Below are positions 6,895 through 37,406 of a DNA stretch of 64,000 nucleotides, in pieces. The stretch lies in the sequence record NC_048047.1; one strand, written 5' to 3'. The notes beneath the pieces are model-generated. The model saw nothing but the letters and a program-made list of their open reading frames with translations. It was not told where the DNA came from and ran no database searches. Made by a program: the position numbers and the translations under genes. Position 1 is the stretch's first letter. Each line of letters opens with the position of its first letter.

Positions 6895-7962
6895 ATGGGT
6901 TACTACGCCACGCGCTATCGTCTCCCCGACGGCACGATCCAGATCACTCAGTGCTACGCCGAGTCCGAGGAACACCTGGGTGAGGTGATGGCGGCGCGTG
7001 GCATGGGTGAGGCCCACCACCCGACGGGCTACGTCATCGCCAAGCCGAAGATGCCGTCTGAGTGGCTGGAAAAGCGCGACTACGCCAAGGCCATCCATGC
7101 CTTGACCTGGGCGGCGATGATCGCCGTCAAGGCGGGCGTGGACGCCTGGACCCTGCTCCACGACAAGGGTCTGATGCACGAGTTGGCGCACCTCAACGAA
7201 TACAACACCGAGGTCACCGCCTATCGACCGATGGATGCATGGTTGAACGCCTTCGGTCACCAAAGTGGGCAAGGCGCTGAGCCGCTCGATCTCAGAGCGC
7301 GCCGGCTGAAGCTGGTGGCCAGCCTCAAGGCGTTCGAGGCCACAGTACCGGGCTTGGCGCCGCCGCCGCCCAAGATCACGACCGTCGACTACAATGAACT
7401 CGAAAAGCGCGTCCTGGCGCAGGCCTACGATCTCCTGATCGAAGATTCCACCATTGAGTTCAAGACCGCGCCCAAGAAGGGCGAGAAGATCGTGGTGTCC
7501 TACGACTACGCCGCTGAAGAAGCCTTCCGATTGCCCGTCCGCATGCGCGTTGGGTCACGCGACTTCGATAAGCAGCGCCTGGAGCAATCCAGGACCGCCA
7601 AGGCCCAGAAGACCCAACAACTCCTGGCGAAGATGAAGGCGACCTCGGAAAAGTTGAAGGCCGCTCAGGCGCCGCCCTCGGAGGTAAGGGAGTCTGCGTT
7701 CAGTTCGATCTTGCGCGAGTATGCCGATAAAGTCCTGGGCAGCCCCCTGAGCAAGGACGCTGTCATCCCCAACGTCTTTTTGCCGGGAAGGACTTTCCGA
7801 GCCTCGAAGGTCGAGCCGGAAATGCAGAATTACGATCCCCAGGAACAGAAGTTCAAATACGAATACATCTTCGAGGTAAATCGCAAGAACCTAGATCAGC
7901 AAATCCTCGAAACTCTGACGCGCAAGGAAGACTTGGCGTTCAAGCTCGGAAGTCCCCTGTGA
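6895..7962 (+). CDS. HExxH family protein 1 (with long C-terminal extension)
   Basis: ATG 6895; LLHDKGLMHELAH; paralogous to 9719 and 36804. Confidence 0.75.
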   Translation: MGYYATRYRLPDGTIQITQCYAESEEHLGEVMAARGMGEAHHPTGYVIAKPKMPSEWLEKRDYAKAIHALTWAAMIAVKAGVDAWTLLHDKGLMHELAHLNEYNTEVTAYRPMDAWLNAFGHQSGQGAEPLDLRARRLKLVASLKAFEATVPGLAPPPPKITTVDYNELEKRVLAQAYDLLIEDSTIEFKTAPKKGEKIVVSYDYAAEEAFRLPVRMRVGSRDFDKQRLEQSRTAKAQKTQQLLAKMKATSEKLKAAQAPPSEVRESAFSSILREYADKVLGSPLSKDAVIPNVFLPGRTFRASKVEPEMQNYDPQEQKFKYEYIFEVNRKNLDQQILETLTRKEDLAFKLGSPL

Positions 7963-8462
7963 TGATTACGCCAGCCCGTCTGCCCGAACTGGACGACCGC
8001 TGCGCCTGCTACGGCCAGTGGCTCGATGAAGACATGTGGGTCACCGGAACGATCGTTGCCATCAGCGGCAGCGGCGCCACCGTCAAGACTGACCAGGGCA
8101 AGGAACTGAAGGTTCCGCACCGCCGGTTGACCTGGAAGAAGGCGCGCTCGGAATGGGCAGTCTGGTCGCCGCAGGTCGATCAGGAGGTCGAGAAGATTCG
8201 CACCCAGCGCGGCGGGGACGGTCGCTCGAAGTACAATCGTAAGCTGGTACCGGGCGAATACGTCCGTTGCCAGATGGGCACCAAGTTCGTCGGTGGTTTT
8301 GTCTGCCGGGTTCTTCTCGAAGGCTACATGATCACCATCCCCAAGGAAAAGTCCTTGGTACCCGACGCCGGCGTCGGTAACTTTGTGATCTCGGCCGACA
8401 TGCTTTCCTACGACCCCGACCGCCTGTGCTGGCAAGCCCGCTACACGCGGGTCAAACCGTGA
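7959..8462 (+). CDS. Hypothetical protein (beta-rich)
   Basis: GTGA coupling, GC3 bias. Confidence 0.7.
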   Translation: MMITPARLPELDDRCACYGQWLDEDMWVTGTIVAISGSGATVKTDQGKELKVPHRRLTWKKARSEWAVWSPQVDQEVEKIRTQRGGDGRSKYNRKLVPGEYVRCQMGTKFVGGFVCRVLLEGYMITIPKEKSLVPDAGVGNFVISADMLSYDPDRLCWQARYTRVKP

Positions 8463-8638
8463 CGAAGGATGATGCGATCAAGGTCGCCGAGGCCGTGAAC
8501 GCCATCGGGGATGTGGGCTTCTATCGAACCGAGACCCTGGCGCGTCTGCGCCGGTCTTTTCCCGAGGTCGCCGACGTCCTCGTCATCGACTATCCATCCA
8601 GCCGCCAGGAAAGGGAGGCTCGCTGTGCATCTGCCTGA
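8459..8638 (+). CDS. Small hypothetical protein
   Basis: GTG 8459 overlaps the upstream stop. Confidence 0.6.
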   Translation: MTKDDAIKVAEAVNAIGDVGFYRTETLARLRRSFPEVADVLVIDYPSSRQEREARCASA

Positions 8639-9212
8639 CGACGCCATCCGCTGGAAGATCAAGGCGCCGCGCCTACTGCCGCTGATCCCCCGTCCCTGGC
8701 TCCAGGAAGCGGCTGAGACCATCCGAGCCGAATGGACAAATCTGCGGCGCGGTCATCACGAGCCGTCGATCACCTCCTACCAACCCTTCGTGCGTGACGT
8801 GCCGCAGCACCAGAAGCTCAATCCTGGTCTGTCCTTCATCTATACCAATGGCGTGGCCCAGTATCACACCGACGGCAACTATCCGCGCTTCTTCTACCTG
8901 CTGATCCTTCATTCGCGGTCCTACTGCGTCGATGGTGGAGCATGGCCCGAGCCGTTCACCGCCGATCGTCCAGGCGACTTGATCTGCCTGGATAGTCACC
9001 TGGAGCACGGGCTGCGCGCCAAGTGGCTGGAGGGACCCGAAGACCTTGACCCTGAGGAGATGAACGTCAACCGCTGTCTGCCGAGCTACTGGCTGGCGCT
9101 GTCGATGGATTCCTGGGCGCTCTTGACACCAGAGCAGACGATCATGGCCTATAGCCGCGCTTTGGAGCACAACAACAAGAATATGCCGGCGCAAGCCCTG
9201 GAGATCGCATGA
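8625..9212 (+). CDS. Putative 2OG-Fe(II) dioxygenase / cupin-fold protein
   Basis: GTG 8625 after GGAGG; HTD ... GDLICLDSHLEH gives an HxD...H facial-triad pattern. Confidence 0.55.
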   Translation: MHLPDDAIRWKIKAPRLLPLIPRPWLQEAAETIRAEWTNLRRGHHEPSITSYQPFVRDVPQHQKLNPGLSFIYTNGVAQYHTDGNYPRFFYLLILHSRSYCVDGGAWPEPFTADRPGDLICLDSHLEHGLRAKWLEGPEDLDPEEMNVNRCLPSYWLALSMDSWALLTPEQTIMAYSRALEHNNKNMPAQALEIA

Positions 9213-9709
9213 AGACCCACTTCCATCGTATCCAGCCGTCCACGGTCCAGGACGCCATCGAGCTTCTGCACTCGTGGATGGACGAAAACGACAAGCTGGG
9301 CTTCATCATGGAAGGCCAGTCCGGTCGCCTGCACCATGGGTTCATGCGCGTCGTGCGTAACGAATGGAACCTCTGGGACACCTCCACGCCAATCGTGCGC
9401 AACACCAAGGCCGTCTATGGCGTCAACCACGCCGACGACATCTCGGGCCTGATCGAAGGCGGTCTGCTGGCCAAGCTGAACGGCGAGGATTTCAACTTCG
9501 ACGCCGAAGCCCGCCGCTACAAGGACCACTGGGCGCGCGAGGCGGCCAGCAAAGTCAAGGCCGTGCCGATCGAACCCTACACCCTCGCTTCCAGCCTCAC
9601 GGGAAGGGCCGACCACCTCGCGCCCAACCCGACTACCCGCCCTGGCACCTTGGAGGCTCCGCGTAAGCGGGGAATCCTCGATCGCCTGTTCTCCCACTTC
9701 AATCAATAG
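9209..9709 (+). CDS. DUF6794-like hypothetical protein
   Basis: H.GF.R.VRNEWNLW ... GVNHADDISGLI motif recognised by eye. Confidence 0.5.
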   Translation: MKTHFHRIQPSTVQDAIELLHSWMDENDKLGFIMEGQSGRLHHGFMRVVRNEWNLWDTSTPIVRNTKAVYGVNHADDISGLIEGGLLAKLNGEDFNFDAEARRYKDHWAREAASKVKAVPIEPYTLASSLTGRADHLAPNPTTRPGTLEAPRKRGILDRLFSHFNQ

Positions 9710-9718
9710 GAGCCCCGC

Positions 9719-10219
9719 GTGGCCAAGACCGACCCCAACCTGCCCTTCCTCTTCCATACCTCCTACGGCGAAGGCGCGCGCCGCCACGGCACCGTGATCG
9801 AGGCCGACAGCATCGAGCATGCTCGCGCCCTGGCCGTCCAGCGCGGCCTCAACGAGACCATCGACAGCCTGGGCTATCAAGGCGGCGATCCGGGCCTGGG
9901 CCATTTTGGCGCCTACCTGCTGAACGAGCGGTACGTCGATGCTCTGCACGAAGCCACTTTCCTGGGCTTCATCGCCATGCAATCGGGCGCGGCCACCGCC
10001 CGTGAAATCCTGGGCGACCGGGGCCTGCTGCACGAGATCGTCCACCTCATGCAGATGGGCAACGATCTCGACGATGAGCATCCCGACAGCCGCCTGATCC
10101 GCATCCGCGAACGGGCCAAGGACATCGCCATGCGCGTCCCCGGCTGGCCCAACGCCCACATCAACCACTTCTACCGCAACGCCGGCTTCGTGCCGAAGAA
10201 GGAAGTGGTCGAAGCCTGA
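9719..10219 (+). CDS. HExxH family protein 2
   Basis: GTG after GGAG; ILGDRGLLHEIVH. Confidence 0.75.
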   Translation: MAKTDPNLPFLFHTSYGEGARRHGTVIEADSIEHARALAVQRGLNETIDSLGYQGGDPGLGHFGAYLLNERYVDALHEATFLGFIAMQSGAATAREILGDRGLLHEIVHLMQMGNDLDDEHPDSRLIRIRERAKDIAMRVPGWPNAHINHFYRNAGFVPKKEVVEA

Positions 10220-10410
10220 TGACCGAGGTCCGACAGGAGGCGTTTGTCCACGCCTCCACCGACCAACGCTGCGTCCGCCTGGACAACGTCCATGGCGGAT
10301 GGGCGGCGCGCAACGCCGCCGGCGTGGAGAAGCAGTTCCCCACCTACGAGGCCGCCTGCCGATATGCGGGACTGCCGCCGCGCGTCCGAGAGCCAGTTCA
10401 TGATCAGTGA
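10219..10410 (+). CDS. Small hypothetical protein
   Basis: TGATG coupling. Confidence 0.65.
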   Translation: MTEVRQEAFVHASTDQRCVRLDNVHGGWAARNAAGVEKQFPTYEAACRYAGLPPRVREPVHDQ

Positions 10411-10657
10411 CGACCTCGATCTCGTGGACCCCGAGGTCGAGGCCCTGGCCCGCGCCATCACCGAGGAGGACTACCGCTACGGCGGCGGCGTGATCCTGCA
10501 CAATGAGCCTGACCTGGACAAGGTCGATGCCCACGTGGCCGCCAAGGTCGAATCACGCTGGCCCGAGCGCATCGAGCAGGCTCAGTCTCTGCTGGCGACC
10601 TTGCATCGATACAACCACACGGTGATACGCCTTCAGGGGCGTCTCGACCTGGGCTAA
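10400..10657 (+). CDS. Hypothetical protein
   Basis: ATG 10400 (MISDDLDLVDPEV...). Confidence 0.65.
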   Translation: MISDDLDLVDPEVEALARAITEEDYRYGGGVILHNEPDLDKVDAHVAAKVESRWPERIEQAQSLLATLHRYNHTVIRLQGRLDLG

Positions 10658-10721
10658 AAGGCGCGACCGGGGAGCGGCGGCGTAGCCGGCGTGAAACGGG
10701 ATGCGTTCGTGCTCTAATTCG

Positions 10722-10747
10722 TTGACACCGTGACGCGACTCGTGGCA
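10722..10747 (+). promoter_or_regulatory. Class II promoter: TTGACA-CC-GTGACG-CGACTC-GTGGCA
   Basis: Box 2 bp after the -35. Confidence 0.7.
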
Positions 10748-10757
10748 CGAACAGTGC

Positions 10758-11669
10758 ATGCAGCAGATCACCGACAGCGCTCCCCATCTTCGAGGCTACG
10801 GCTGGGCGCCGGGCGGCTACATGTCGACGTGTCACTCCTGCGAGCAGACCTTCATCGGCGACAAGCGCGCCATCTCCTGCCATCCGTGCGCCACCCGCCG
10901 CTACGAGAAAGAGCATCCCGAGACCATGACCGACGATCGCCGCCGCGTGCGCCAATCCTTCGCCGTCTACCTGGACCAGGATGGCGTGGTGTTCGACTTC
11001 GATGAGGGCCTGCGTCGGCTCGGGTTCCAACCCGACCCCGAGTACAACAAATCGTCGCACGCGATGAACGACGAAGCCAACCTGTGGAAGCAGGGCATGT
11101 ACGAGGTGATCAAGGGCACCGACTTCTTCGCCCGTCTCCCGCTCATGGACGGAGCCGTTGATCTCTACGCGGCTGTCGAGGACGCCGACCCGATCTTCCT
11201 GACGGCGTCGCCGAAGTTCGGCTCGACCGAGCATGATTTCCTGACCCATCCCTTCTTCCTGGGCGCGGCCTACCACAAGCGCCGATCGGTCGAAGAGGTG
11301 CTCCTGCCCCAGGTCGCCAAGCTGCGTATTCAGCAGTTGACGGGCAAGGAGCCCAAGGCCGCCGTACCGCGCGTGCGGATCGCTGACGATCGCTTCATCT
11401 GCACGACGTCCGCGCGCAAGCAGGAGTATATGCACCGGAAGCACTCGCCGCATCAGGTCCTGATCGACGACCGCATCGCCAACTGCGAGGCATGGGCGGC
11501 GGCTGGTGGCATCGCCATCCTGCATACCTCGGCCCGTAGCTCGATCACGATCTTCGAGCGGCTCGTCGATAGGGTGCTGGCCGGCGAGACCTTGGAGGCA
11601 GGCGTGCTGCGGACGGACTTTCCGCGTAGCAAGCAGCCCAAGGTCGATCTGGCGCAGGTCCTGGGCTGA
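10758..11669 (+). CDS. HAD-family 5'(3')-deoxyribonucleotidase-like protein with N-terminal Zn ribbon
   Basis: YLDQDGVV (motif I), FLTA (II), LIDD (IV); N-terminal CHSC...GDKRA..CHPC. Confidence 0.75.
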   Translation: MQQITDSAPHLRGYGWAPGGYMSTCHSCEQTFIGDKRAISCHPCATRRYEKEHPETMTDDRRRVRQSFAVYLDQDGVVFDFDEGLRRLGFQPDPEYNKSSHAMNDEANLWKQGMYEVIKGTDFFARLPLMDGAVDLYAAVEDADPIFLTASPKFGSTEHDFLTHPFFLGAAYHKRRSVEEVLLPQVAKLRIQQLTGKEPKAAVPRVRIADDRFICTTSARKQEYMHRKHSPHQVLIDDRIANCEAWAAAGGIAILHTSARSSITIFERLVDRVLAGETLEAGVLRTDFPRSKQPKVDLAQVLG

Positions 11670-11953
11670 TGAAGGACGCCCTTCTGGCCCTCTACGCCGT
11701 GGTGTCGGCGACGGCCATGGGGATCGCGCCGCTCATCCCGCTTATGTGCATGGTGGTCATCGCCGTGGAGAACCCCAAGCCAGAGGTGGAACGTAAGGCC
11801 TGGGGCCAAGCGTTCCGGTTTGGACTAGCCTGCTTCTCCGCCGGCTTCATCATGCTGCTGCTGGCCTATGGCCTGGGCTGGATGGCGCCGACTTATCGGG
11901 GCATCCCGCTCTGGGAGCAGAAAAATTACATAGCCGAGCATACTCGGCGCTAG
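11669..11953 (+). CDS. Small membrane protein
   Basis: Two hydrophobic segments; coupled. Confidence 0.7.
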   Translation: MKDALLALYAVVSATAMGIAPLIPLMCMVVIAVENPKPEVERKAWGQAFRFGLACFSAGFIMLLLAYGLGWMAPTYRGIPLWEQKNYIAEHTRR

Positions 11954-11962
11954 GAGGAAGCG

Positions 11963-12214
11963 ATGGGACTGCAATTGGATTTGGCCTGGATCATCCTCTG
12001 GGCGCTCGCGGCAGGCACGGGCCTGTCCGTCGGTTTGTTGGCCGAGGACATGGACAAGCGCTTCTGGGGCACCGTCCTGGGTGGTTGTCTGATCATCCTC
12101 TTCTTCTGGAAGGTCGTTCTTGCGGCGATCATCACCTTCTACGTTTTCGGCGCCGTGCTCTGGGGTCTGGGCGCCCTGCACAATCTCTCGGTCGCGAAAG
12201 GCTGGTTGCGCTGA
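11963..12214 (+). CDS. Small membrane protein
   Basis: GGAGG RBS; about 3 TM. Confidence 0.7.
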   Translation: MGLQLDLAWIILWALAAGTGLSVGLLAEDMDKRFWGTVLGGCLIILFFWKVVLAAIITFYVFGAVLWGLGALHNLSVAKGWLR

Positions 12215-12546
12215 TGTCCCGTGTCGTCCACTGGTACGCCATCAAGCCCTGGTCCGGCCCTGAAGCAGATTATCGGATCGCCGATGATCTGGCCGCAGGC
12301 ACCAGGGTCCTGACCGCTTGCATGCGGGAGGGAGCACCGGTGATCTATGTCGAGAAGGTCACGGCCAAGGGGCGGACCTCCGACATGTTCAAGAACCGCA
12401 TCGACGCCTTCTACGTGGAGACCGGCAAGGAGTTCGAAGAAGTCCTGCCACCGGGCGAACCGTTCCGCTACGTCGACACCATTCAGATCGATCGTCCGTC
12501 GGGGCTCTACTTCTATCATGTCTACGCACGGGTCCTGGGTCTGTGA
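12214..12546 (+). CDS. Hypothetical protein
   Basis: ATG 12214 coupled (MSRVVHWYAIKPW...). Confidence 0.7.
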   Translation: MSRVVHWYAIKPWSGPEADYRIADDLAAGTRVLTACMREGAPVIYVEKVTAKGRTSDMFKNRIDAFYVETGKEFEEVLPPGEPFRYVDTIQIDRPSGLYFYHVYARVLGL

Positions 12547-12811
12547 AGTTCTAAACCGCCGAGACTTCGGTGGTAAAATACCCCGTGGCGCTAAGTCTAT
12601 CGACAGGAACACGCCATACGGGAACCCATTTCACATCTCGCCTAAGATGACTCGGCCACAGGCCATAGCAGCTTTCAGTGTCTGGCTCCCGACACAACCA
12701 GCATTGATCGCCCGCGCGCGCCGCGAACTCTATGGCTACAATCTTGCCTGCTGGTGTGATCCCTTGCCTTGTCATGGGCACATCTGGAGGAAAATTCTCA
12801 TTACACCGTGA
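12518..12811 (+). CDS. DUF4326-family protein (start uncertain)
   Basis: IDR.TPYGNPF ... LYGYNLACWCDPLPCHG signature; many A/T-ending codons. Confidence 0.7.
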   Translation: MSTHGSWVCEVLNRRDFGGKIPRGAKSIDRNTPYGNPFHISPKMTRPQAIAAFSVWLPTQPALIARARRELYGYNLACWCDPLPCHGHIWRKILITP

Positions 12812-12825
12812 CGCCATCCTTGACA
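12800..12825 (+). promoter_or_regulatory. Class II box GTGACG-CCATCC-TTGACA upstream of the alarmone hydrolase
   Basis: Box 12808-12825; contains a TTGACA; preceded by ATTACA-CC. Confidence 0.6.
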
Positions 12826-12855
12826 GGGTAAGCGAAACCTAGGACACAATGTCAC

Positions 12856-13656
12856 ATGCTCTCGACCCCCGCGATCAAAGAGGCCTACGAATTCGCCTGT
12901 CAGGCGCATGCGGGGCAAATGTACGGCGACCAGACGTACGACGTCCACTTCCTTTCGGTCGCCCAGACCCTGGTCGAGCACGGCTATGACACCGACGACT
13001 GGATCATCATGGGCCTGACCCACGATGTGGTCGAGGACACCCCGGTCACCAAGGGTCAATTGGCCGACCGTTATGGCGACAATGTGGCCGAAGGCGTGTG
13101 GACGGTTTCGGGCTTTGGCGCCACCCGTGCGATCCGCAACGGCTGCATTGCCCTGAAGCTCTTGCGCCGGCCGCAGTACGCGCCTTTGAAGTGCGCCGAT
13201 CGAATCAGAAACGTTCGATCCGCCGCCGAGAAGAAGTCCATCCGCCATGCCGAACTCTATCTGGGCGAGGCCGGCGAATTCGATCCGCTGGTCAAGGGCC
13301 ACGTCCTGGCCTCGATGTTCCGCGACTTGCAAGACGCCTACCATGAAGCCGAACTCATGCTTCAGGCCGAGGGCGTCCAACGGAAGACTGGGCCGGCGAT
13401 GGAAGTCCACCCCGACGCCGCCTTCGACGATCAGGCGATCGACGCCTTTGCCGAGGCGCTGAAGGTCAAGATGGCCCAGTCTCGCGCCAAGGGCCGGGGA
13501 GGATGGAGCCGGCCCGAAGAGGTCTCCCAGGCCGCCCTGGTCGAGGCGTTGCATCATCACGTGAGCAAAGGTGATCCCCGTGACGTGGCGCTGTTCGCCA
13601 TGATGCTCAACTACCATGGCTGGTCGACGGCCATGACGCTTTCCGAGGCTGCATGA
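12856..13656 (+). CDS. Mesh1/small alarmone hydrolase-like HD protein fused to a helical phage domain
   Basis: AHAGQ, Y..H, THDVVEDT, KCADRIRN; C-terminal HPD..DD.AID.FA...K.KM..SRAKGRGGW...HV.KGDP.DVA..AMML. Confidence 0.8.
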   Translation: MLSTPAIKEAYEFACQAHAGQMYGDQTYDVHFLSVAQTLVEHGYDTDDWIIMGLTHDVVEDTPVTKGQLADRYGDNVAEGVWTVSGFGATRAIRNGCIALKLLRRPQYAPLKCADRIRNVRSAAEKKSIRHAELYLGEAGEFDPLVKGHVLASMFRDLQDAYHEAELMLQAEGVQRKTGPAMEVHPDAAFDDQAIDAFAEALKVKMAQSRAKGRGGWSRPEEVSQAALVEALHHHVSKGDPRDVALFAMMLNYHGWSTAMTLSEAA

Positions 13657-14093
13657 CTTACACGATCAAGCAGGCGTTGATCGCCCTTGACCATCTGACC
13701 CCTTCCCTCCCGCGCGAGACCGAGAGCGAGGAGGGCGGTTTTGAGACCAAGCCACCGGCCGACAAGTCGTGGGGCACGATTTCGCTGGCGCGCCGCCTCC
13801 AGACGTCCAAGGAAGCCGCCAGGGTCATCGAAGATGATCTGGTCGAAGACGGGCTGATGATCAGGACACCCGGCTTCCAGGGCAATCCGCGATTCAACCT
13901 GACCGATGCGGGCCACGCCTATCTGGTTCTGGGCCGCAAGGGTGGGCTGACCGCCGAACAGATCGTCAAGCGCATCCCCAGGGGGCCTTGCGCGGCTGAT
14001 CCGATCTCCATGCGTGGCACGCTGCTGAAGATGGAGTTTCTCGGCATCGTCTCGTCGGCCGACGGCGGTCAGACCTACTCGCTGGTGTCGTGA
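13653..14093 (+). CDS. Winged-helix-like protein (possibly tandem)
   Basis: ISLARRL...LVEDGLM...FNLTDAG; second L.KMEFLGIV segment. Confidence 0.55.
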   Translation: MTYTIKQALIALDHLTPSLPRETESEEGGFETKPPADKSWGTISLARRLQTSKEAARVIEDDLVEDGLMIRTPGFQGNPRFNLTDAGHAYLVLGRKGGLTAEQIVKRIPRGPCAADPISMRGTLLKMEFLGIVSSADGGQTYSLVS

Positions 14094-14881
14094 TGATCCA
14101 CGCCCGCGACCAGGAGGTCCTGGAATTCGTTCGCCAGGGTATCGAAGGCCCCGAGTTCATGCGCTGCGAAGTGCGCGAGCGTATGTGGGGAGCCTATTAC
14201 TGGATGGTCGCCACCGCGACCATGGGCCAACTCCAAGAGTTTCGTAAGCGTGGCGTGATGGGTTTCAGTCTACTTGAGTTGACCACTGAAGAAACCAGGA
14301 AGATCATCGAAGCGGAGGTCGCTTGGATGCTTCCGGGGATGGTCACCCGGTTCCCCGAACAAATCAGTAGAAGTTTCGGCGGCCTGCATATCAGCGCAGG
14401 ACTTCGGCGCGCCTACGATTTCCACCACACCAAGCAGCACTTCGAAGACGAGAACCCGTCCGCCGAGGTTGTGGGCCAAAGTGTCGACCGCGATTGGTGG
14501 CTGGTCCGCAAGAAGGACCCGATCGGCATCCTGGAAGAAGACCGGGCGTCTGGCGCGCGCAACGCAGTCATGTTCAGCGACCGCCCCCACGCCTCCAAGG
14601 AAGATTACCTGGACAGTGACGTCGTCGACGCGCCGGCGCTGCTACCGGCTGAGTACCATATCCTTCTCGACGCCCGAGCCAAGTTCTTCAAGAGGATGCG
14701 GCTGGGCGTGATGGGCTCCAGAACGGAAGTCGCCGAGCCGTTGGTCAGCCTGGGGCTGATCAAGCTGGAGCGGCCTCAAGACCGTTCACGCTCCGTTCAT
14801 GCGTGGGAGATCAGGCTGACGGACCTGGGCCTGCGGTTCTGCGGCATCAGCGACAAGCAGCGCAGGACTTTCGAAAGATGA
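14090..14881 (+). CDS. Hypothetical protein with C-terminal wHTH-like segment
   Basis: LVSLGLI...IRLTDLG; coupled. Confidence 0.65.
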   Translation: MMIHARDQEVLEFVRQGIEGPEFMRCEVRERMWGAYYWMVATATMGQLQEFRKRGVMGFSLLELTTEETRKIIEAEVAWMLPGMVTRFPEQISRSFGGLHISAGLRRAYDFHHTKQHFEDENPSAEVVGQSVDRDWWLVRKKDPIGILEEDRASGARNAVMFSDRPHASKEDYLDSDVVDAPALLPAEYHILLDARAKFFKRMRLGVMGSRTEVAEPLVSLGLIKLERPQDRSRSVHAWEIRLTDLGLRFCGISDKQRRTFER

Positions 14882-15147
14882 GCGTCTTCACGCCGTCCGA
14901 GAAGCAGCGCGGCATGCTGCACAACGCCCTGGGCCTGCTTTGGGCCAAGGAGCCTTATCGACGCCATTACGTGGTGGGGAAGGATAGTCCCTCCTACCAT
15001 GAGTGGAAGGAGTTGTGTGAGCACGGATACGGCGAACAGGCCGCAGACTCCGAGACTGGAGAACTCTACGACGCCGGGCCTCAGGTCTGGTTCTATGTAA
15101 CCGAGAAGGGCGCCGCCCTCTTCGGCAAGTCGCTTCCCCGCGACTAA
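14878..15147 (+). CDS. Hypothetical phage protein (wHTH-like)
   Basis: ATG 14878; YRRHY...W..L...GY...FYVTEKG. Confidence 0.65.
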   Translation: MSVFTPSEKQRGMLHNALGLLWAKEPYRRHYVVGKDSPSYHEWKELCEHGYGEQAADSETGELYDAGPQVWFYVTEKGAALFGKSLPRD

Positions 15148-15171
15148 AGCTTACAAGTTTGGGTGGTGTAA

Positions 15172-15800: not shown

Positions 15801-15813
15801 AAAGCTGTTGACA
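15797..15813 (+). promoter_or_regulatory. Class I promoter (CTAGAAAGCTGTTGACA)
   Basis: Repeat motif. Confidence 0.8.
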
Positions 15814-17075: not shown

Positions 17076-17084
17076 GAGCATCCC

Positions 17085-28907: not shown

Positions 28908-28927
28908 CTACAAGAAAACTGTTGACA
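28908..28927 (+). promoter_or_regulatory. Class I promoter (CTACAAGAAAACTGTTGACA)
   Basis: Repeat motif, N16, CTAAAA. Confidence 0.8.
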
Positions 28928-28979
28928 CCCGTCTAAGGGGTCTCTAAAAGACGCTCATCCGCCGCTAGAGGAGACCCCG

Positions 28980-29345: not shown

Positions 29346-29348
29346 GCC

Positions 29349-29720
29349 ATGACCGACCATCCGCTCGTCATTCGCCGCGACGCCATCAAGAAGCTCCACG
29401 TCGCTGTTGCGGCGCTGACCGGCTGGGGTCGCCAAAGCTACCACCTGGGCGCCAACGCCCTGCGGATCGCGCTGGAGCGCGCCATGTCGACGGAAGACGA
29501 CGGTAAGTGGCGCTACGAAGCTCTAGGTTTTGTCGAAGGCACCCGCCAAGCCCTGGAGGGCATGTCGGACACCTACTGCGACATCCCCTGCGATCCACTC
29601 TACGCCGCCCTTTCTCACGCGCGGGACCTCCTGCGCTGGGAACAGCCCAAGCACTACGACGCGGTGATGACCGACATCGCCCCGACCGTAAAAGCCCTGG
29701 AGGACCTCGCCCGTGGTTGA
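29349..29720 (+). CDS. Hypothetical protein, tandem paralogue A
   Basis: WRYEALGFVEGTR. Confidence 0.75.
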   Translation: MTDHPLVIRRDAIKKLHVAVAALTGWGRQSYHLGANALRIALERAMSTEDDGKWRYEALGFVEGTRQALEGMSDTYCDIPCDPLYAALSHARDLLRWEQPKHYDAVMTDIAPTVKALEDLARG

Positions 29721-30099
29721 GTTCACCGCCATCACCGTCGACGACCGTCGCCAGCAGGTCCTGCGCGCCATCCGTGACGCCGTTGTGCGTCATCGCACCG
29801 ACAAGAAGCCCTGGACCCATCCGACGTTCGAGGCCATCCGCGACGCGGCCGACGCCGGCGCCAAGGATCGCATCTGGCGCATGGAAGCGGCCGGCTATGT
29901 CGACGGCACCCGCAACACCCTCCTGCGCCTGCGCAGCAACTTCGTGCTGCCCCAGGGCCTGGACATGCAACCCATGCTCGACGCCCTCATCCAGGTCTAT
30001 CAGGTCCTGGAGGTCGAGGACCTCGCCGCCCTGAAATTGGAGGAGACCGGCGTCCACCGGGTCCTCGACGTTCTGGAAAGGACCCGCCCTCGTGACTGA
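29713..30099 (+). CDS. Hypothetical protein, tandem paralogue B
   Basis: WRMEAAGYVDGTR. Confidence 0.75.
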   Translation: MVEFTAITVDDRRQQVLRAIRDAVVRHRTDKKPWTHPTFEAIRDAADAGAKDRIWRMEAAGYVDGTRNTLLRLRSNFVLPQGLDMQPMLDALIQVYQVLEVEDLAALKLEETGVHRVLDVLERTRPRD

Positions 30100-30538
30100 T
30101 CCGATCCCCGACCGCCTGAGCCGCAACGCCGAAAACGGCGTCTGGAACCTCTACGACTGCAATCTGAACCGATTGCTGACGGACGCGGACTTCGCCCACG
30201 CGGGCGTGACGGTCGCCGAAGTTGGCACCGCGCTCGACTCGGGCCACTACAAGTTCTACAGCCTGGGCGAGCCGGGCGACTGGACGCGTCGCGATGTCGT
30301 GCGGGCTGGCACCCTGGATTTCCCGGTGCGCGGCGTGACGATCGAACTGGCGGCCATCCGCACCTGGATGGACACCGAATGGGTGAAGCGCGAGGCGGAC
30401 AAAGCGAAGGCGGCAGCCGCAGCGGAGTTCGTCGACGCGATCAAGTCCCAGATGGAAGCCGCCGCCATCACCCACGAGGACGTCATCCTGCACCTGACCC
30501 CCGGTCAGCAGCAGATGCTGAAGGAGTACCTGAAGTGA
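30092..30538 (+). CDS. Hypothetical protein
   Basis: Coupled ORF. Confidence 0.75.
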   Translation: MTDPIPDRLSRNAENGVWNLYDCNLNRLLTDADFAHAGVTVAEVGTALDSGHYKFYSLGEPGDWTRRDVVRAGTLDFPVRGVTIELAAIRTWMDTEWVKREADKAKAAAAAEFVDAIKSQMEAAAITHEDVILHLTPGQQQMLKEYLK

Positions 30539-30900
30539 CCAACATCCATGCCTTCTCCGAAGCCCTCTACGAGAGCCGTGACACCATGCGCGGCGTGGCG
30601 GGCGGTCTGGCGCACCTCGCCGGCGCCTTCATGATGACGGGCAACGCCAAGGTCGCCGAGGAACTCTACGATCTGTGCAACGTCCTGGACAAGCAGGTCG
30701 ACCGGCTGATGTCGGCCTACAGCCAGAAGGTCAACGACGACATGCGCGCCTCCGAGCAGGCGACCGCGACCATGCTGCTGGGTATCGCCGGCGGCATGAA
30801 GGTCGCGGGCGGCCTCTCGCCCGAGAGCGAGGACGTCATGTTCGCTCTGGCCGAATCCGTCTCGCCGGGCATCACCATCCCGATCCGCGAGGCCGTCTAG
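30535..30900 (+). CDS. Hypothetical protein
   Basis: GTGA coupling at 30535. Confidence 0.7.
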   Translation: MTNIHAFSEALYESRDTMRGVAGGLAHLAGAFMMTGNAKVAEELYDLCNVLDKQVDRLMSAYSQKVNDDMRASEQATATMLLGIAGGMKVAGGLSPESEDVMFALAESVSPGITIPIREAV

Positions 30901-30902
30901 CC

Positions 30903-31319
30903 TTGAACGACACCACCAATCCGGCGCATACCCGCGCCAGTCAGATCAGGGCGCTGTCGACCTGTCTCGACAAGTTCGTGGCGCGGTTCGACACGCCGTC
31001 CAAGCGCCGCCTGATGCCCTTCTATCTTCAGCCGGCCGCCGAGATGGTCCGAGAGTCCCTGACCGCGACGCGCGCCGACAGCATGATGGCGCGCAAGGAG
31101 TGGGGCCTGAAGCTGATGGGAGCCCATGCGCTGCTCGGCGTGCATCCCAAGGACGCGGTGGCGCCCCTGGTGACCCAGGTCCTGGATCATGCCGCCTACG
31201 TCATGTTGGCCGAGACGACCAACCGGATGAAGGAGCGCTGGGACCCTATCAACACCCTCGTCGCCAAGGTGGCGGCGATCAAGATCGACCCGCCGGTCTC
31301 GACTCCCGTCAAGGCCTAG
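30903..31319 (+). CDS. Hypothetical protein
   Basis: TTG 30903 after GAGG. Confidence 0.65.
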   Translation: MNDTTNPAHTRASQIRALSTCLDKFVARFDTPSKRRLMPFYLQPAAEMVRESLTATRADSMMARKEWGLKLMGAHALLGVHPKDAVAPLVTQVLDHAAYVMLAETTNRMKERWDPINTLVAKVAAIKIDPPVSTPVKA

Positions 31320-31334
31320 CTGAAGGAGCCTACG

Positions 31335-31571
31335 ATGAGCCAGAACACCCATCCCACCTTCCGCCTCCAGATCACCGTCCGTGATTATCTGCCGTTCGAG
31401 GTTTTCGGTGATTCACCCGAAGACGTCATGACCCAGTTCACCGACGCGGTCCATCGCAAGGCCAAGATCGGTGGCTGGAGCGCGCACGCCCAGCACGAAA
31501 TCGACCGCATCCGCCCCGAGTGGATCGAGGAACTACGTCATGGCGTGACGATCGAAGGCGAGCCTTTCTGA
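31335..31571 (+). CDS. Hypothetical protein
   Basis: GGAG RBS. Confidence 0.7.
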   Translation: MSQNTHPTFRLQITVRDYLPFEVFGDSPEDVMTQFTDAVHRKAKIGGWSAHAQHEIDRIRPEWIEELRHGVTIEGEPF

Positions 31572-31576
31572 TCCTG

Positions 31577-31593
31577 CAAGAAAGCTGTTGACA
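31577..31593 (+). promoter_or_regulatory. Class I promoter (CAAGAAAGCTGTTGACA)
   Basis: Repeat motif, N16, CTAAAA. Confidence 0.8.
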
Positions 31594-31639
31594 CGGCGGT
31601 GATGGCCTCCTAAAACGGGTTCAACGAAAGGAGGCCCTC

Positions 31640-31885
31640 ATGGCTGAGTTCCATGTCATCTGCCGTCGGGACGGTCGCGAGCGCGATCGCGCCGACTTCG
31701 AGTCCCTGGCCCAGGCCAAGACGCGCGCCACCCGCTACGCCGAGCGCGAGGCGATGATTCAGGGCATCCTGCATACGGACGAGTTCGAGGCCGCCAAGGA
31801 CGCGATCCAGGCTTTCAAGCCGGGATGCTTCAAGGGCGTCCAGATCGGCGCCAACGCCGTCGTGCGGATCGAGGATCACTCGTGA
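31640..31885 (+). CDS. Hypothetical protein
   Basis: GGAGG RBS. Confidence 0.75.
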   Translation: MAEFHVICRRDGRERDRADFESLAQAKTRATRYAEREAMIQGILHTDEFEAAKDAIQAFKPGCFKGVQIGANAVVRIEDHS

Positions 31886-32175
31886 AGCTGTTCGTCTGGC
31901 AAGGCGGCGACGTCGTTCGCGACTATAGCAGCGGCATGGTCGTGATCTTGGCCGAGAACGAGGCCGTCGCCTGGGACAAGTTGCGACAAGCCCATCTGCG
32001 GGCTTTCGTTCAATTGGTCACCGGCCATCACTTCTGCGTCGATCACCCCGAGGAACTGGTGCTCTACTGGGAAGACCTGGAGCCTGATGAGATGATCAGG
32101 CCGGGCTTCCCGATCCTGCCGGTGGCCTACGACATCAATCAGGCGCCCGTGCTGGTTCAATGGGGAGGCGGCTGA
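31882..32175 (+). CDS. Hypothetical protein
   Basis: GTGA coupling at 31882. Confidence 0.7.
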   Translation: MKLFVWQGGDVVRDYSSGMVVILAENEAVAWDKLRQAHLRAFVQLVTGHHFCVDHPEELVLYWEDLEPDEMIRPGFPILPVAYDINQAPVLVQWGGG

Positions 32176-32546
32176 TGGCCATTCCGACCTACACGATCGA
32201 ACGCGACATCGACGACACCCGTCAACGGGACTTGATGTCCCTGGCCTACGAGTGGTTCGACAACGGTATCGGCAAGGCCATGTACCAGTTCGCCGGCGGC
32301 CGTCCCTGTGACGGACGCAAGCTGCTGGCGGAGGCTAAGACAACTCTTCGGGTCGCCCAGGCAACCAATCACCGCGACGTGCCTCGCTTGGTTGAACTCG
32401 TCGACTACGCCGCCGCGCAGGTGGCCTATGCCCGCCTGCGCATCAAGACTCGCGTCCTGCTGATCGAGGCGGCCAAAGCCGGCGTCGACAAGCACGAAGT
32501 GAAAGCCTGGATGGAGGAAGCCTATGCTGACCAACCGCGTGCCTGA
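32175..32546 (+). CDS. Hypothetical protein
   Basis: TGATG coupling, GGAGG RBS. Confidence 0.7.
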   Translation: MAIPTYTIERDIDDTRQRDLMSLAYEWFDNGIGKAMYQFAGGRPCDGRKLLAEAKTTLRVAQATNHRDVPRLVELVDYAAAQVAYARLRIKTRVLLIEAAKAGVDKHEVKAWMEEAYADQPRA

Positions 32547-32787
32547 CTTCATGCTCGATCCCGTGACCGGGGTGGGGCCGACCATCAAGCAGCGCATGGT
32601 CGAGCGCCTGCGCATCCGACAGGACCTCGAACGGGAGCATCCTGGCTGGAAGGTCCAAAGCACTACCGAATCGCGTACGGGCTGGATCGAAGCCGTCATG
32701 TTCAAGGATGGCGAAACCTTCCCCAAGCGCGTCTCCTGGAACCGCGACGCCTATCTGGGCCGGCAGTTCCTCCTACCCTTCAACTAG
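32524..32787 (+). CDS. Hypothetical protein
   Basis: GGAGG RBS. Confidence 0.7.
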   Translation: MLTNRVPDFMLDPVTGVGPTIKQRMVERLRIRQDLEREHPGWKVQSTTESRTGWIEAVMFKDGETFPKRVSWNRDAYLGRQFLLPFN

Positions 32788-32796
32788 GAGGCCCCA

Positions 32797-33012
32797 ATGG
32801 GCTGGAAATCGACCCAGCGCCTGACCCGTCAGGACGCTGAAGAACGCTATCTCCGCTTTCGGCTCGCCGACCCGGACCTGATCCGTTCCATCCGCGCCGA
32901 GGCGGTGATGATGAACGATACGGCCCTCGAAGACGCGCTGGAGCGCCTCGCAGAACAGAACCATGAATCCGGCTACAACTACCTCATCACCGCCTACCCC
33001 GACGAAGACTAA
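32797..33012 (+). CDS. Hypothetical protein
   Basis: GGAGG RBS. Confidence 0.7.
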   Translation: MGWKSTQRLTRQDAEERYLRFRLADPDLIRSIRAEAVMMNDTALEDALERLAEQNHESGYNYLITAYPDED

Positions 33013-33062
33013 GTTCGTCCTGGTGCTGGGACAGCCACGTCAGGCTCTCTGGCGGCGAGCGG

Positions 33063-33115
33063 CAAGAAAACTGTTGACACGCCTGCTCTAGGTCCCCTAG
33101 AACGGGCGTGTCAAC
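33063..33115 (+). promoter_or_regulatory. Class I promoter within an inverted repeat (mirror-image promoter on the minus strand)
   Basis: GTTGACACGCC-tgct-CTAG-gtccc-CTAG-aacg-GGCGTGTCAAC. Confidence 0.8.
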
Positions 33116-33132
33116 GAAAGAGGAGACACCCC

Positions 33133-33996
33133 GTGGCCAAGGCCGAGAACGTGAGCGTCGTGCTCATCATCTACAAGCTCTACGAGACCGACAGCGCCGT
33201 CGCCGTCAATGCCGGGGAGCTTCAGATGCAGCGTGACAATCCGCGCGGCCTTGCCTATCTGCCCAAGAGCCAGATCATCGTCGGCAAGCCACTGGCCGGC
33301 CATGAGGACAAAGTCCGCTCGCGTGGCGTGCCCATGAAGGTCGCCGAGCGCCTGGGCATCTCCTTGACGGGCTACTATGCCGTCTTCGCCTCAGGCGGTG
33401 AGGTGACCTCGCGGGTCGAGTGGTGCCCCGTCACCATGCCCAAATGGCTGGCCGATAAGAACGGCTGGACCCATCAATCGGCTGAGGACATGGTCGCGGT
33501 CTGCAAGACCTGGGCCTATACCGACATCACGGTGCAGCAGGCCCTGGAGGCGATCGCCTCGCCGGGTGATCTGGCCCTCGCCCGCAAGGCCGCGAGAGAG
33601 GCCAAGGACCCTACCCAGGAGCGCCTGGGCAAAGCCCTCGATAGCTTGATGAACCTGCCTGCAACCGAGCCGGTCGCCTGGGAGGCCAAGGAGACCGGCT
33701 ATTACTGGATCGCGCTCAACGACCACATCGACTTCTATCCCGTGGGCAAGGCGCGTCCTTTCCTGGTCAAGGTCGAGGTTGAAGAGGCCTATGCCATGGT
33801 AACCTCCGTCGACGGCCGGCTCCACTTCGAGTTCGACATGACCGTCAAGGACCGTCCGCGCAACCAGTACAAGATCGCCTTCTCCGGCAACATCGCCGGC
33901 GCCATCCCCACCACCACCTGGGAATGGCTGGGCGTGACCTGGATCAGCGAGGTCCACCCGCCGGCCATGCCCAAGGAGCTTGCCCTGTGCGAGTAA
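33133..33996 (+). CDS. Hypothetical protein
   Basis: GTG after GAGGAG; ETD.AV...YLPKSQI...MPKWLA phage motif. Confidence 0.75.
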   Translation: MAKAENVSVVLIIYKLYETDSAVAVNAGELQMQRDNPRGLAYLPKSQIIVGKPLAGHEDKVRSRGVPMKVAERLGISLTGYYAVFASGGEVTSRVEWCPVTMPKWLADKNGWTHQSAEDMVAVCKTWAYTDITVQQALEAIASPGDLALARKAAREAKDPTQERLGKALDSLMNLPATEPVAWEAKETGYYWIALNDHIDFYPVGKARPFLVKVEVEEAYAMVTSVDGRLHFEFDMTVKDRPRNQYKIAFSGNIAGAIPTTTWEWLGVTWISEVHPPAMPKELALCE

Positions 33997-34244
33997 ACCA
34001 GAGGAAGCCTTCCATCCTGCGTTGGGTCGAGGACCGAGGCGGCGCCATGGGCTATCTCGGCGACATCTACGTCGCCCATGTCGCTGACTATGGGACCGGC
34101 AAGCGCTACTGGCGCACCGAGTTCGCCGCGCCGGGCTTTAACCGGGCGGGCAAGGGCATCGGCGAAGCCTACTGCCGACGGCAAGCCGAAAGGCGATCCA
34201 GAACTGGTTGGACGCGGCCGGCCTTGCGATCAAGTCGACGGTAG
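33987..34244 (+). CDS. Hypothetical protein (start uncertain)
   Basis: GTG 33987 after GGAG. Confidence 0.55.
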   Translation: MRVNQRKPSILRWVEDRGGAMGYLGDIYVAHVADYGTGKRYWRTEFAAPGFNRAGKGIGEAYCRRQAERRSRTGWTRPALRSSRR

Positions 34245-34280
34245 AGTAAGCAAGGACGTCACCACGATAGAAGAAACGAC

Positions 34281-34517
34281 ATGCCACACGTTGTCACCGT
34301 TGAGGACGCCATGGCGATCCTGGCGTCCATGCCCAAGAAGGCCGTCCTGGTGATTGGCAACGAGTGCGTCGCCGGCCTGTCCCTGCAAGAGGGCCGGGTC
34401 CGCGAAGGCTACTACAACAAGTCGTTCAAACCGCTCGAAGGCGGTCGTGATCAGGCCGTGCGCTTCACGACCGTCACCGAACTTTCCACCGGCGAAGTCA
34501 CTGAGGTGCCCCTATGA
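34281..34517 (+). CDS. Hypothetical protein
   Basis: Co-directional ORF, GC3 bias. Confidence 0.7.
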   Translation: MPHVVTVEDAMAILASMPKKAVLVIGNECVAGLSLQEGRVREGYYNKSFKPLEGGRDQAVRFTTVTELSTGEVTEVPL

Positions 34518-35155
34518 TCGGCGCGTTCGATCTCCTGCTGCGCAAGGCCGGCGCCGTGCGCTTCTCGGTCAACGAGAACCGAAGCTACTACGAAACGGCC
34601 GCGATCGACTTCCACAAGCACATGATGCTGCCGGAGGAATGGTCGAACACGATCGAGAAGGCCATGATCGAAACCCTGGGCGCCCAGAAGGACTCGCCCA
34701 TCACGACGACCAAGATTTTCCTGCGCGACGAGGTCCAGGGCAAGGAACGTTCCTTCACCGCCGGCGTCAACCCGGCGCTCGTGATCGCCAGGGCTCTTGA
34801 TCGCTGGCGTCTTGAAACCGGGAACCTCGATCCGATCACGGACTTCGCGGCCGACGAGATGTTGGAGTTGGAACAGGCGATGATCTACCTGACGGTAGAG
34901 TCCGTCTCCTGGTACATCGACGGCAACGAGCATCTGCGCGACGGCGCGTCCACATACGCCGAGATCGTCCGTGACTATCCAGGCTCTTTTCCGACCTGGG
35001 TCGGCGAGCCTGTTGCTGACGACTACACCGGCGACATCATGATCCTGACCTTCTATCCCGATACACCCATCGGCTCCTACCGAATGGCGGCTGCGACGCT
35101 GCCGGAAGTCCTACGAGCCGCCCACGCCCTGATGAGAGAATTGCGCGGACAATGA
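34514..35155 (+). CDS. Hypothetical protein
   Basis: Coupled; C-terminal FYPDTPIG phage motif. Confidence 0.75.
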   Translation: MIGAFDLLLRKAGAVRFSVNENRSYYETAAIDFHKHMMLPEEWSNTIEKAMIETLGAQKDSPITTTKIFLRDEVQGKERSFTAGVNPALVIARALDRWRLETGNLDPITDFAADEMLELEQAMIYLTVESVSWYIDGNEHLRDGASTYAEIVRDYPGSFPTWVGEPVADDYTGDIMILTFYPDTPIGSYRMAAATLPEVLRAAHALMRELRGQ

Positions 35156-36000
35156 GCCTCTTCGAAACCAAGGACGCCTTTGGCGACCGCATGAAGGCCT
35201 ACGAGAAGGTTGAGACCGGTCGCCGTTTCATGCCGGGCCTGCCGCTCTACGTCCGCCTGGACGGACGGGGCTTCTCGCGCTTCACCAAGGGCATGGCCAA
35301 ACCCTTTGATCCGCGCATGACCGAGGCGATGGCCGAGACCACCCGCACGCTGGTGGCCAAGACCCACGCCAGCCTCGGCTACTGCCAATCCGACGAGATC
35401 AGCTTGGTCTTCATGCCCAAGGACCAGATCAACGACTACTTCTTCGCCGGCAAAGTGCAGAAGATCGTCTCGGTCCTGGCTGGCCTATGCTCGACCGTTT
35501 TCTATCGCGAGTTCGAGGTTCAATGCGGCGATCATATCCCCACACGCGGCGTCGAGCATCCCGACCAGTTCCTCAGGCGCTTGCCGCACTTTGACGCCCG
35601 CGCCTTCCAGGTGCCGGTGCTCTACGAGGTCGCCAACGCGGTCCTGTGGCGTGTCAAGGACGCCGAACGCAATGCCGTGCAGATGGCGGCCCAGGCGGTC
35701 TATTCGCAGCGGGACCTGCACAAACAGCCCACCCGCAAGCTGCGCGAGATGATCGCCGAAGCTGGCGTCGACTTCGAGGCCTACCCCAGGGCGGTGCGGT
35801 CGGGCCGCTTCTACGCGCGCATCACCGAAGAACGGGCGACGCCGCCGGAAATTCTGGCCAGGATGAAGGAGAAGGATCGCGACAAGAACGCGATCATCAG
35901 CCGCAGCGAAGTCCAGGAGATCATCCCCGAAGGGCCGATCACCTACCAGACGATCGCCGACCTCTTGAAGTTCGATCCGCCCGCGACGGTGGCGCCGTGA
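35152..36000 (+). CDS. thg1: tRNA(His) guanylyltransferase / Thg1-like 3'-5' polymerase
   Basis: RMK.YE, RLDGRGFSRFT, SDEISL, KI.S, FDARAF, WR..DA.RN. Confidence 0.9.
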   Translation: MSLFETKDAFGDRMKAYEKVETGRRFMPGLPLYVRLDGRGFSRFTKGMAKPFDPRMTEAMAETTRTLVAKTHASLGYCQSDEISLVFMPKDQINDYFFAGKVQKIVSVLAGLCSTVFYREFEVQCGDHIPTRGVEHPDQFLRRLPHFDARAFQVPVLYEVANAVLWRVKDAERNAVQMAAQAVYSQRDLHKQPTRKLREMIAEAGVDFEAYPRAVRSGRFYARITEERATPPEILARMKEKDRDKNAIISRSEVQEIIPEGPITYQTIADLLKFDPPATVAP

Positions 36001-36254
36001 GCCGCGTCGTCGTTCATGAGCGCAACGACCGCTCGATCTTCTACATGGTCGCCCTTGATGGCGCCGGCCCGCCCACGCGCCTGCATGCCGACCCGGATAA
36101 GGCGCTGAAGGAGGCCAAGCGCCTGACCAAGCACTTCAAGCGCCCCGCCCGTATCCTGATGCAGATCGGCATGGTCTTTCCGACCTCCCAGCCGGACTCC
36201 GTCATCGTGGCGAATTTCGCCGTCGGCCAATGGTACACCGAACATGGCTCATGA
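35997..36254 (+). CDS. Hypothetical phage protein
   Basis: GTGA coupling; PT..H....A.KEA.RL. Confidence 0.7.
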   Translation: MSRVVVHERNDRSIFYMVALDGAGPPTRLHADPDKALKEAKRLTKHFKRPARILMQIGMVFPTSQPDSVIVANFAVGQWYTEHGS

Positions 36255-36804
36255 CCTGACGGGTTGGTCCATGTCCTTCCTGGAGCCGCAGCCGCCGGTG
36301 CGCGTCAACGAGCACGGCTGGGCGATCTACCCGAACTTCCACTGCTATCTGACGCGCTATGCGCCCAAGGCCAAGCCGGAAGACAAGGACGTGATCCTTG
36401 AAGTGATCGGCGCCGCAAGCTCCACGAGCATGGATGAAGCCCATGCGGAGGTCCTGCGCCAATTCACCCACTACCGTCGTGACCGGCTCGACTTCTACCG
36501 CTGGCGCTATGCCAAGCATCTACTCGATCAGGCGCTTCCAGGGGTCCGTCAGCGGCTGAAACAGCCCCGATGGTTCCGACATAGCTGGCAGGATGAATAT
36601 CCCGACCAGAAGCCGCCCAAGAGCCTTGATGACGGCCGGGAGTCCATCTGGTTCCCCGAGCGCTTCATCAACGAGACCTACGAGGCCGCCTGGGGCGATG
36701 GTGAGACGGTCCTGACGGTCGTGGCCGCCCGTTTTGGCTGGACCCTAGGACAGGCCTATCAGGCGACCGAGGACTGGTTTCGCGATCCGGTGAACTACAA
36801 CTGA
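36244..36804 (+). CDS. Hypothetical protein
   Basis: Co-directional ORF. Confidence 0.7.
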   Translation: MAHDLTGWSMSFLEPQPPVRVNEHGWAIYPNFHCYLTRYAPKAKPEDKDVILEVIGAASSTSMDEAHAEVLRQFTHYRRDRLDFYRWRYAKHLLDQALPGVRQRLKQPRWFRHSWQDEYPDQKPPKSLDDGRESIWFPERFINETYEAAWGDGETVLTVVAARFGWTLGQAYQATEDWFRDPVNYN

Positions 36805-37406
36805 TGCCCCTATATTTTAGCACCTACAAGTTCAAAACGTCCAAATACCCAGGGCAGACAGTCGAGGCTGCGACGCAGTTCTACGCCCGCGACTACGGCC
36901 ATGCGCTCCAAACGCTGAAGATGCGGAACCTGGACGAATTCGTTTGCCGCCCGCCCTTGCCGCGACCCGGTATCGTCACAGGCGCCGAAGGTCCTCCCGA
37001 GATGCCTTCCGACATGATACAGCAAGGTCGCTTGGCCGAAGCCATGCATGCGGCGATCTATATGGGCTTCCTGGCGCACGCCTGCGAGGCCACGAAAGGC
37101 TACGATCTCTTGCATGACATCGGTGTGCTGCACGAGATCGGACATCTTCTTCTTTTCGATGCCTGGGGTAAGGCAGGGTCGCTACGCAACCCCTACGCGG
37201 CCTCCGGTCGCGACAAGGAGATCGTCGCGGAAGTCGCGGCCTTGGAGCGTCGCATCCCTGGTTTCCATCCCTCGTGGTCAGGCGTGGAGGAATATCCAGC
37301 CGTACCGTTCCCGCAGCGCCTTGCCTGGGCCAAGGACGGCATCCAGGAACCGGACTGGTATGCCAAGGACATCCCGTGGTCGGCGCCTCGGGTGATCTTC
37401 GGCTAA
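36804..37406 (+). CDS. HExxH family protein 3
   Basis: TGATG coupling; LLHDIGVLHEIGH. Confidence 0.75.
   Translation: MPLYFSTYKFKTSKYPGQTVEAATQFYARDYGHALQTLKMRNLDEFVCRPPLPRPGIVTGAEGPPEMPSDMIQQGRLAEAMHAAIYMGFLAHACEATKGYDLLHDIGVLHEIGHLLLFDAWGKAGSLRNPYAASGRDKEIVAEVAALERRIPGFHPSWSGVEEYPAVPFPQRLAWAKDGIQEPDWYAKDIPWSAPRVIFG

Follow-up and report, generated by a model that had tools for sequence, protein, structure and literature searches.

Among the closest described systems with which the proteins considered here can be compared are the zincin metalloproteases, where the His residues of the HExxH motif bind zinc and the Glu activates water, and phrog_24358, a PHROG produced by automatic clustering and annotated as "unknown function". 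The locus studied is a stretch of 64,000 nucleotides (the window) from the genome of the Caulobacter phage CcrBL9 (MH588546.1 / NC_048047.1, 322,272 bp; Bertelyvirus, Dolichocephalovirinae). It contains three genes, referred to below as A, B and C (CcrBL9 gp419, gp414 and gp361), all of them annotated as "hypothetical protein" in RefSeq. All positions are those of the window, that is, record positions minus 186,000. A preliminary description of the sequence assigned the three products to an unnamed family of metalloproteases or metal-binding proteins. Our analysis has shown that the three genes belong to a genuine paralogue family, and that the HExxH motif characterises the copies in CcrBL9 rather than the family. 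The reading that we favour, with a probability of about 0.45, is a new metal-dependent enzyme domain, represented by an uncharacterised alpha/beta family of large phages with a domain of approximately 145 residues.

Paralogy, distribution and subfamilies

The three open reading frames (ORFs) start on the plus strand at the positions given in the preliminary description, and the alignment reproduces the shared motifs in the order proposed there: A-x4-H; R-(G/N)-(M/L)-x-E; A-x-H-(A/E); (L/I)L(H/G)DxG(L/V)(M/L)HE(L/I)xH; (V/I)PG. The alignment also contains MPS(E/D), common to A and C, and about 200 extra C-terminal residues in A, past the shared core of about 155 amino acids (aa). The pairwise BLASTP E-values (3e-11 for A/C, 3e-9 for B/C and 2e-10 for A/B, with identity of about 30%) are far beyond chance, and thus A, B and C are true paralogues. 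All three match phrog_24358 (3.5e-5 for A, 1.3e-6 for B and 8.3e-15 for C), the match of C spanning its residues 1-159 and the first 160 positions of the hidden Markov model (HMM). The six-frame translation of the window, scanned with the family HMM, yields exactly three ORFs, namely A, B and C, and a tblastn search of the whole CcrBL9 genome also finds three family places. The copies, previously considered dispersed, are so only in part: C lies 27 kb further on, while A and B, separated by 2.8 kb, belong to the same string of co-directional genes. All the genes considered here are intact.

A database search with the family HMM, suggested in the preliminary description, was performed as a profile search that covered 1.84 billion representatives exhaustively, the relatives being clustered at 50% identity. 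It gave 431 clusters at E<=1e-3, 152 of them at E<=1e-10, and therefore we are dealing with a widespread domain of approximately 145 residues, nearly always N-terminal, in proteins of 100-528 aa. The word-indexed search yielded two relatives only, and the locus search with an alignment of four sequences found CcrBL9 and CcrSC only. CcrBL9 and CcrSC carry three copies each, and the other Bertelyviruses (C1, C2, J4, BL47 and RB23) carry two, A-like and B-like, with the same spacing of 2.8 kb. One copy each is found in CcrSwift, Magneto, Karma and CcrBL10, as well as in the Brevundimonas phage Bajun and the Ralstonia jumbo phage RsoM2USA. The genomes of the cultured carrier phages are all 207-344 kb long. 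Metagenomic members are located among small ORFs of the same direction arranged in strings, as is typical of accessory regions in phages.

Moreover, a degenerate DNA motif of 15 codons, derived from the family column counts, was scanned against three collections, and the matches were sorted by the HMM. The scan produced a few new members and several chance matches. In the collection with one genome per prokaryotic species there were two true members, both in contigs of Bacteroidota metagenome-assembled genomes (L018:2769-3179 and L023:1432-1875), and therefore the family is not strictly phage-borne. These members sit among cellular genes (QueA, a glucose/sorbosone dehydrogenase-like gene) and adjoin DDE transposases, a RhuM-family gene and a zeta-toxin-like kinase. 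Hence the family is found mainly in large phages and occasionally in bacterial mobile islands.

When 150 family representatives were clustered, A fell into a subfamily of 40 clusters, in which long C-terminal extensions predominate; the subfamilies of B and C comprise 26 and 4 clusters, respectively. For each of the three proteins there are relatives in other phages whose cores are 44-53% identical to it, compared to about 30% identity to the paralogues in the same genome. Between CcrBL9 and CcrSC the ratio of nonsynonymous to synonymous substitution rates is 0.22 for A, 0.08 for B and 0.05 for C (the CcrSC orthologue of B is 96.4% identical). The three copies are thus long separated and under purifying selection, not rapidly diversifying. 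As the copies belong to separate old subfamilies and selection on all three is purifying, the earlier proposal that the copies diverged to act on variable host factors, an arms-race idea, is not supported. CcrBL9 retains one representative from each of these three old subfamilies, which suggests that the copies have three different, non-redundant specificities and do not stem from a recent duplication.

Conserved residues, predicted fold and possible function

Conservation was counted in the same 150 representatives, and residues are numbered as in C. Three His residues, H82, H110 and H114, are present in all of them (150/150 each), and because of this invariance metal binding, as proposed in the preliminary description, is plausible. 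R41 and E45 are retained in 149/150 each, D105 and G153 in 147/150 each, G107 in 146/150, P152 in 145/150, Y8 in 142/150, and E148, situated 34 residues downstream of the motif, in 138/150. At position 33, corresponding to the A-x4-H element, 127/150 have H, E or D. The HExxH Glu, E111, is found in only 90/150; elsewhere the residue is Q, N, A, R, D, S, G, L or T. Such replacements occur in every subfamily, and in one of them the Glu is rare. Since the motif Glu is limited to these members, the real motif is H...D-x-G-x-x-H-x3-H, and the signature of the family consists of this motif together with R...E and E...P-G. The minimal members (about 140 aa) stop just past P-G.

The AlphaFold2 model of C, built with the 150-row alignment, has a predicted local distance difference test score (pLDDT) of 91.2 and a predicted template-modelling score of 0.86. 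It starts with two strands, followed by a helix ending at R41 and a short strand after E45, the N-terminal sheet being three-stranded; then come helices 68-73, 77-93 (with H82), 99-103, 108-123 (with H110 and H114, in positions i/i+4 of the same helix), 130-134 and 136-150 (with E148), and finally P-G. The model of the core of A (pLDDT >90) has the same order of elements. In BFVD, Foldseek finds family members only, in particular the A protein and the CcrSC orthologue of B (probability 1.00, E 5e-10 and 2e-6), and thus the paralogues share one fold. Structure prediction, also proposed in the preliminary description, therefore gave a common fold for the paralogues, but neither zincin nor other folds from the PDB were matched.

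The presence of L-L-H-D-x-G in A and C, as well as a weak HDOD match of C (E 0.15), could be explained by a diverged HD-domain phosphohydrolase, with the His and Asp of LLHDxG forming the HD dyad of the metal-binding residues H...HD...D conserved in such enzymes. Still, the His of this dyad is present in 14/150 members and is Gly in B, the model of C has an N-terminal beta-sheet, being alpha/beta as opposed to the all-alpha HD fold, no HD structure is found among the Foldseek matches, and no HD model from Pfam is matched by the 150 members. Based on the conservation counts and the lack of a fold match, this reading was rejected as having a negligible probability.

In the reading that we favour, the three invariant His residues probably hold a metal ion, as judged from their conservation. 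H82 on one helix, and H110 and H114 on the next one, would converge to form a mononuclear metal site, which would include at least one near-invariant carboxylate from D105, E148 and E45. Metal sites with three His residues usually serve catalysis and not structure, and R41, E45 and Y8 would make the site catalytic, most likely that of a hydrolase, rather than purely structural. The long helical C-terminal extension of A may mediate oligomerisation or targeting.

The metal site could also be that of a classical zincin metalloprotease cleaving host or defence proteins, with E148 as the third ligand, as in gluzincins. In agreement with this, H-E-x-x-H is situated on a helix in all three CcrBL9 copies, the family has a conserved Glu (138/150) 34 residues further on, and there are scattered sub-threshold matches of family members to peptidase models (WLM in two members; M60, M85 and M90 in one each). 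However, the motif Glu is lost in every subfamily while the other key residues stay, and, as it is dispensable across the family, the mechanism is probably not a classical zincin one. In addition, the invariant upstream H82 lies outside the zincin pattern, and in the model of C the small N-terminal sheet is separated from the H-x3-H helix by three helices, unlike the order of elements usual for zincins. No zincin, with its catalytic fold of a sheet, a backing helix and an active-site helix, is listed by Foldseek for the two confident models, no peptidase model of Pfam or NCBIfam is reached, and weak PDB sequence matches vanish with two other family profiles. We thus consider the protease part of the preliminary description quite improbable.

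Another possibility, unlikely but deserving consideration, is a non-catalytic binding module, in which the ion would be structural, while the protein would bind, and thereby inhibit or retarget, a host or phage macromolecule, with partners differing between subfamilies. Such a role would be consistent with small, stand-alone proteins, often of about 140 aa, with variable C-terminal tails or extensions lacking enzymatic domains, with their location in strings of accessory genes, where host-takeover proteins are typically found, and with the variability of the would-be catalytic Glu. At the same time, the invariant polar residues (R41, E45, D105, E148, Y8) exceed structural needs; structural zinc sites are usually rich in Cys, and the family has no conserved Cys. 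Moreover, the pattern of conservation is the same in all subfamilies, while surfaces specific to different partners would be expected to vary.

The genomic context of one metagenomic member (P0034), located inside a head-tail module between capsid-side genes and a tail-completion gene, could indicate a component of the virion or its assembly, similar to a head-tail connector, rather than an enzyme. However, methyltransferase genes and further insertions of a non-structural kind are present in the same module, and the remaining contexts are strings of non-structural genes. In addition, two members reside in bacterial chromosomal contigs beside transposases, and an invariant His triad is not expected in connector proteins. 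We regard a virion role as very unlikely.

Several observations weigh against a new metal-dependent enzyme domain. B lacks the Glu at the position of E148, and so do 7/26 members of its subfamily. The location of P0034 described above also counts here. The domain lies outside every known family and fold tested, being known so far as an automatic, unannotated PHROG. In the PDB, Foldseek finds no match to the models of C and A (best E 0.46 and 0.33, respectively, TM-score <=0.25), and the profile search of PDB sequences was negative. Neither A, B and C nor the 150 relatives match Pfam or NCBIfam, with only isolated hits at E>=0.002, and the three proteins have no match at E<=1 to PADLOC models; the view of the family as unnamed is therefore upheld, and nothing was found in the literature on these proteins. 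An all-against-all BLASTP comparison of the ORFs from 16 loci identified no conserved neighbours beyond the synteny of close relatives, and no known domains fused to the long members, which could hint at a substrate, were observed. Finally, the term "most likely hydrolase" relies on the residue pattern, and homology to characterised enzymes is seen neither in sequence nor in fold.

A more specific version of the favoured reading, put forward tentatively and more doubtful than its general form, is a new-fold mononuclear metalloenzyme (His triad, carboxylate and the invariant Arg/Glu pair), specific to phages and mobile elements. It would act on a host or phage macromolecule in takeover or counter-defence, and the Bertelyviruses would possess three isoforms of ancient divergence, each with its own specificity. 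Should the His triad indeed form a catalytic metal site, the domain would represent an undescribed enzyme fold with hundreds of clusters, carried by many uncultured phages as well as by giant phages infecting Caulobacter, Brevundimonas and Ralstonia. More generally, HExxH in a single genome need not mean a zincin, as the family-wide counts show this Glu to be dispensable while other residues are invariant. The residue signature, the domain boundary, the subfamilies and the corrected start of gp361 can be used to select members for structural work.

Gene boundaries and neighbouring genes

The positions of the genes, the key residues and the neighbours are listed in the table. The C-terminal extension of A has no Pfam match and is partly kept in the homologues from Bajun and the Bertelyviruses.

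Table. Features of the CcrBL9 window; residues are numbered within each protein
Feature	Position	Strand	Description
Paralogue A (gp419)	6895-7962	+	355 aa; RefSeq coding sequence 192895-193962; core domain and helical C-terminal extension; family HMM E 1e-61
Core His-triad domain of A	6895-7359	+	Residues 1-155; aligned core; AlphaFold2 pLDDT >90 over most of residues 1-160
C-terminal extension of A	7360-7959	+	About 200 aa; AlphaFold2 long helices 166-183, 222-257, 265-281, 315-351, mixed confidence
Paralogue B (gp414)	9719-10219	+	166 aa, GTG start; coding sequence 195719-196219
Paralogue C (gp361)	36804-37406	+	200 aa
H-x3-H of A (HELAH)	7177-7191	+	Residues 95-99; translation
H-x3-H of B (HEIVH)	10031-10045	+	Residues 105-109; translation
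H-x3-H of C (HEIGH)	37131-37145	+	Residues 110-114; translation; on AlphaFold2 model helix 108-123
Third invariant His, H82 of C	37047-37049	+	Codons checked; equivalents A 7096-7098, B 9947-9949
R41...E45 pair of C	36924-36938	+	Codons checked; equivalent in A 6997-7011
D105 of C	37116-37118	+	D-x-G turn preceding the H-x3-H helix; codon checked
E148 and P-G (152-153) of C	37245-37262	+	Closing the domain; conservation counts
gp418	7962-8462		Between A and B; SH3-like (Myosin_N) match
gp415	9209-9709		Between A and B; DUF6794 match
Thg1-like gene	35152-36000		tRNA-His guanylyltransferase
Gcw_chp / porin-like gene	38094-38783		Signal-peptide protein
PnuC-like gene	38793-39428		Transporter
NadR-like gene	39425-40465		Adenylyltransferase/kinase
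Deoxyribosyltransferase-like gene	40462-40854

The start of C deviates from the annotation, as RefSeq places the start of gp361 at position 37002 (134 aa), and the CcrSC orthologue (L008:6001-6600) is annotated as a protein of 120 aa. Homology to phrog_24358 and to the N-terminal parts of A and B extends over the 66 codons in positions 36804-37001, and the corresponding 66 residues are 85% identical in CcrSC. The ATG at 36804 shares one base with the stop codon of the upstream gene (TGATG). Moreover, a metagenomic relative (P0002, 198 aa, 50% identical to C) has already been called at full length. Taken together, homology, conservation in CcrSC, the stop/start overlap and the full-length relative indicate that 36804 is a better start than the RefSeq one, the predicted product being a protein of 200 aa.

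Two genes upstream of C there is a gene for a Thg1-like tRNA-His guanylyltransferase, and in the unrelated phage RsoM2USA a 41%-identical Thg1-like gene (L015:871-1686) is located 2.3 kb upstream of the family member. A functional link to Thg1 was considered and rejected: Thg1-like genes occur in 158 phage records, compared to about 20 records with the family, and thus no general link is found. CcrColossus and CcrPW have Thg1 and, among the matches listed, no family match; in the Bertelyviruses C1 and RB23 Thg1 is present and the C copy is absent. No tRNA genes were identified by ARAGORN in the 64-kb window.

Further along the window, the gene for a porin-like protein with a signal peptide (Gcw_chp, Pfam E 2.5e-19) lies directly upstream of the PnuC-like transporter gene, which is followed by the NadR-like and deoxyribosyltransferase-like genes. 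The order of these four genes is kept in a metagenomic relative (L024, 50% identity). The porin-like and PnuC-like genes may encode a candidate phage outer-membrane channel paired with an importer of precursors of nicotinamide adenine dinucleotide (NAD).

Between A and B, the match of gp418 to the SH3-like Myosin_N domain (E 1e-5) does not reach the gathering score, and gp415 has a match to DUF6794 (E 9e-8); the other neighbours have no Pfam or PHROG match. In Bajun (L007:3292-5431), the start of the A-like member (476 aa) lies two bases past a gene that carries the annotation of a GcrA cell-cycle regulator, and the CcrBL9 gene upstream of A has no similarity to this gene.

Comparison with known protein families

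Features common to the family and to zincins of the gluzincin type are a pair of His residues separated by one helical turn, the Glu that follows the first His (in copies from CcrBL9), and another, conserved Glu some 34 residues towards the C-terminus. The family differs from zincins in the invariant R...E and D-x-G elements, in the upstream His and in the motif Glu, which is not conserved.

Among individual zincin groups, the NleC-type zinc proteases (Peptidase_M85) give a sub-threshold match over the H-x3-H helix and the next segment; one of the 150 members matches the Pfam M85 model with E 0.028. NleC-type chains appear with one profile only (E 0.11-0.24), are gone with two other profiles and are absent from the Foldseek results, and this candidate was rejected. 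We treat the likeness as a chance similarity of the motif helix.

The proteins of phrog_24358 belong to the same family, collected there by automatic clustering; the PHROG has no name, function, motif description or structure. The family as delimited here is much larger, with 431 clusters, and comprises subfamilies; members of three of them occur together in CcrBL9.

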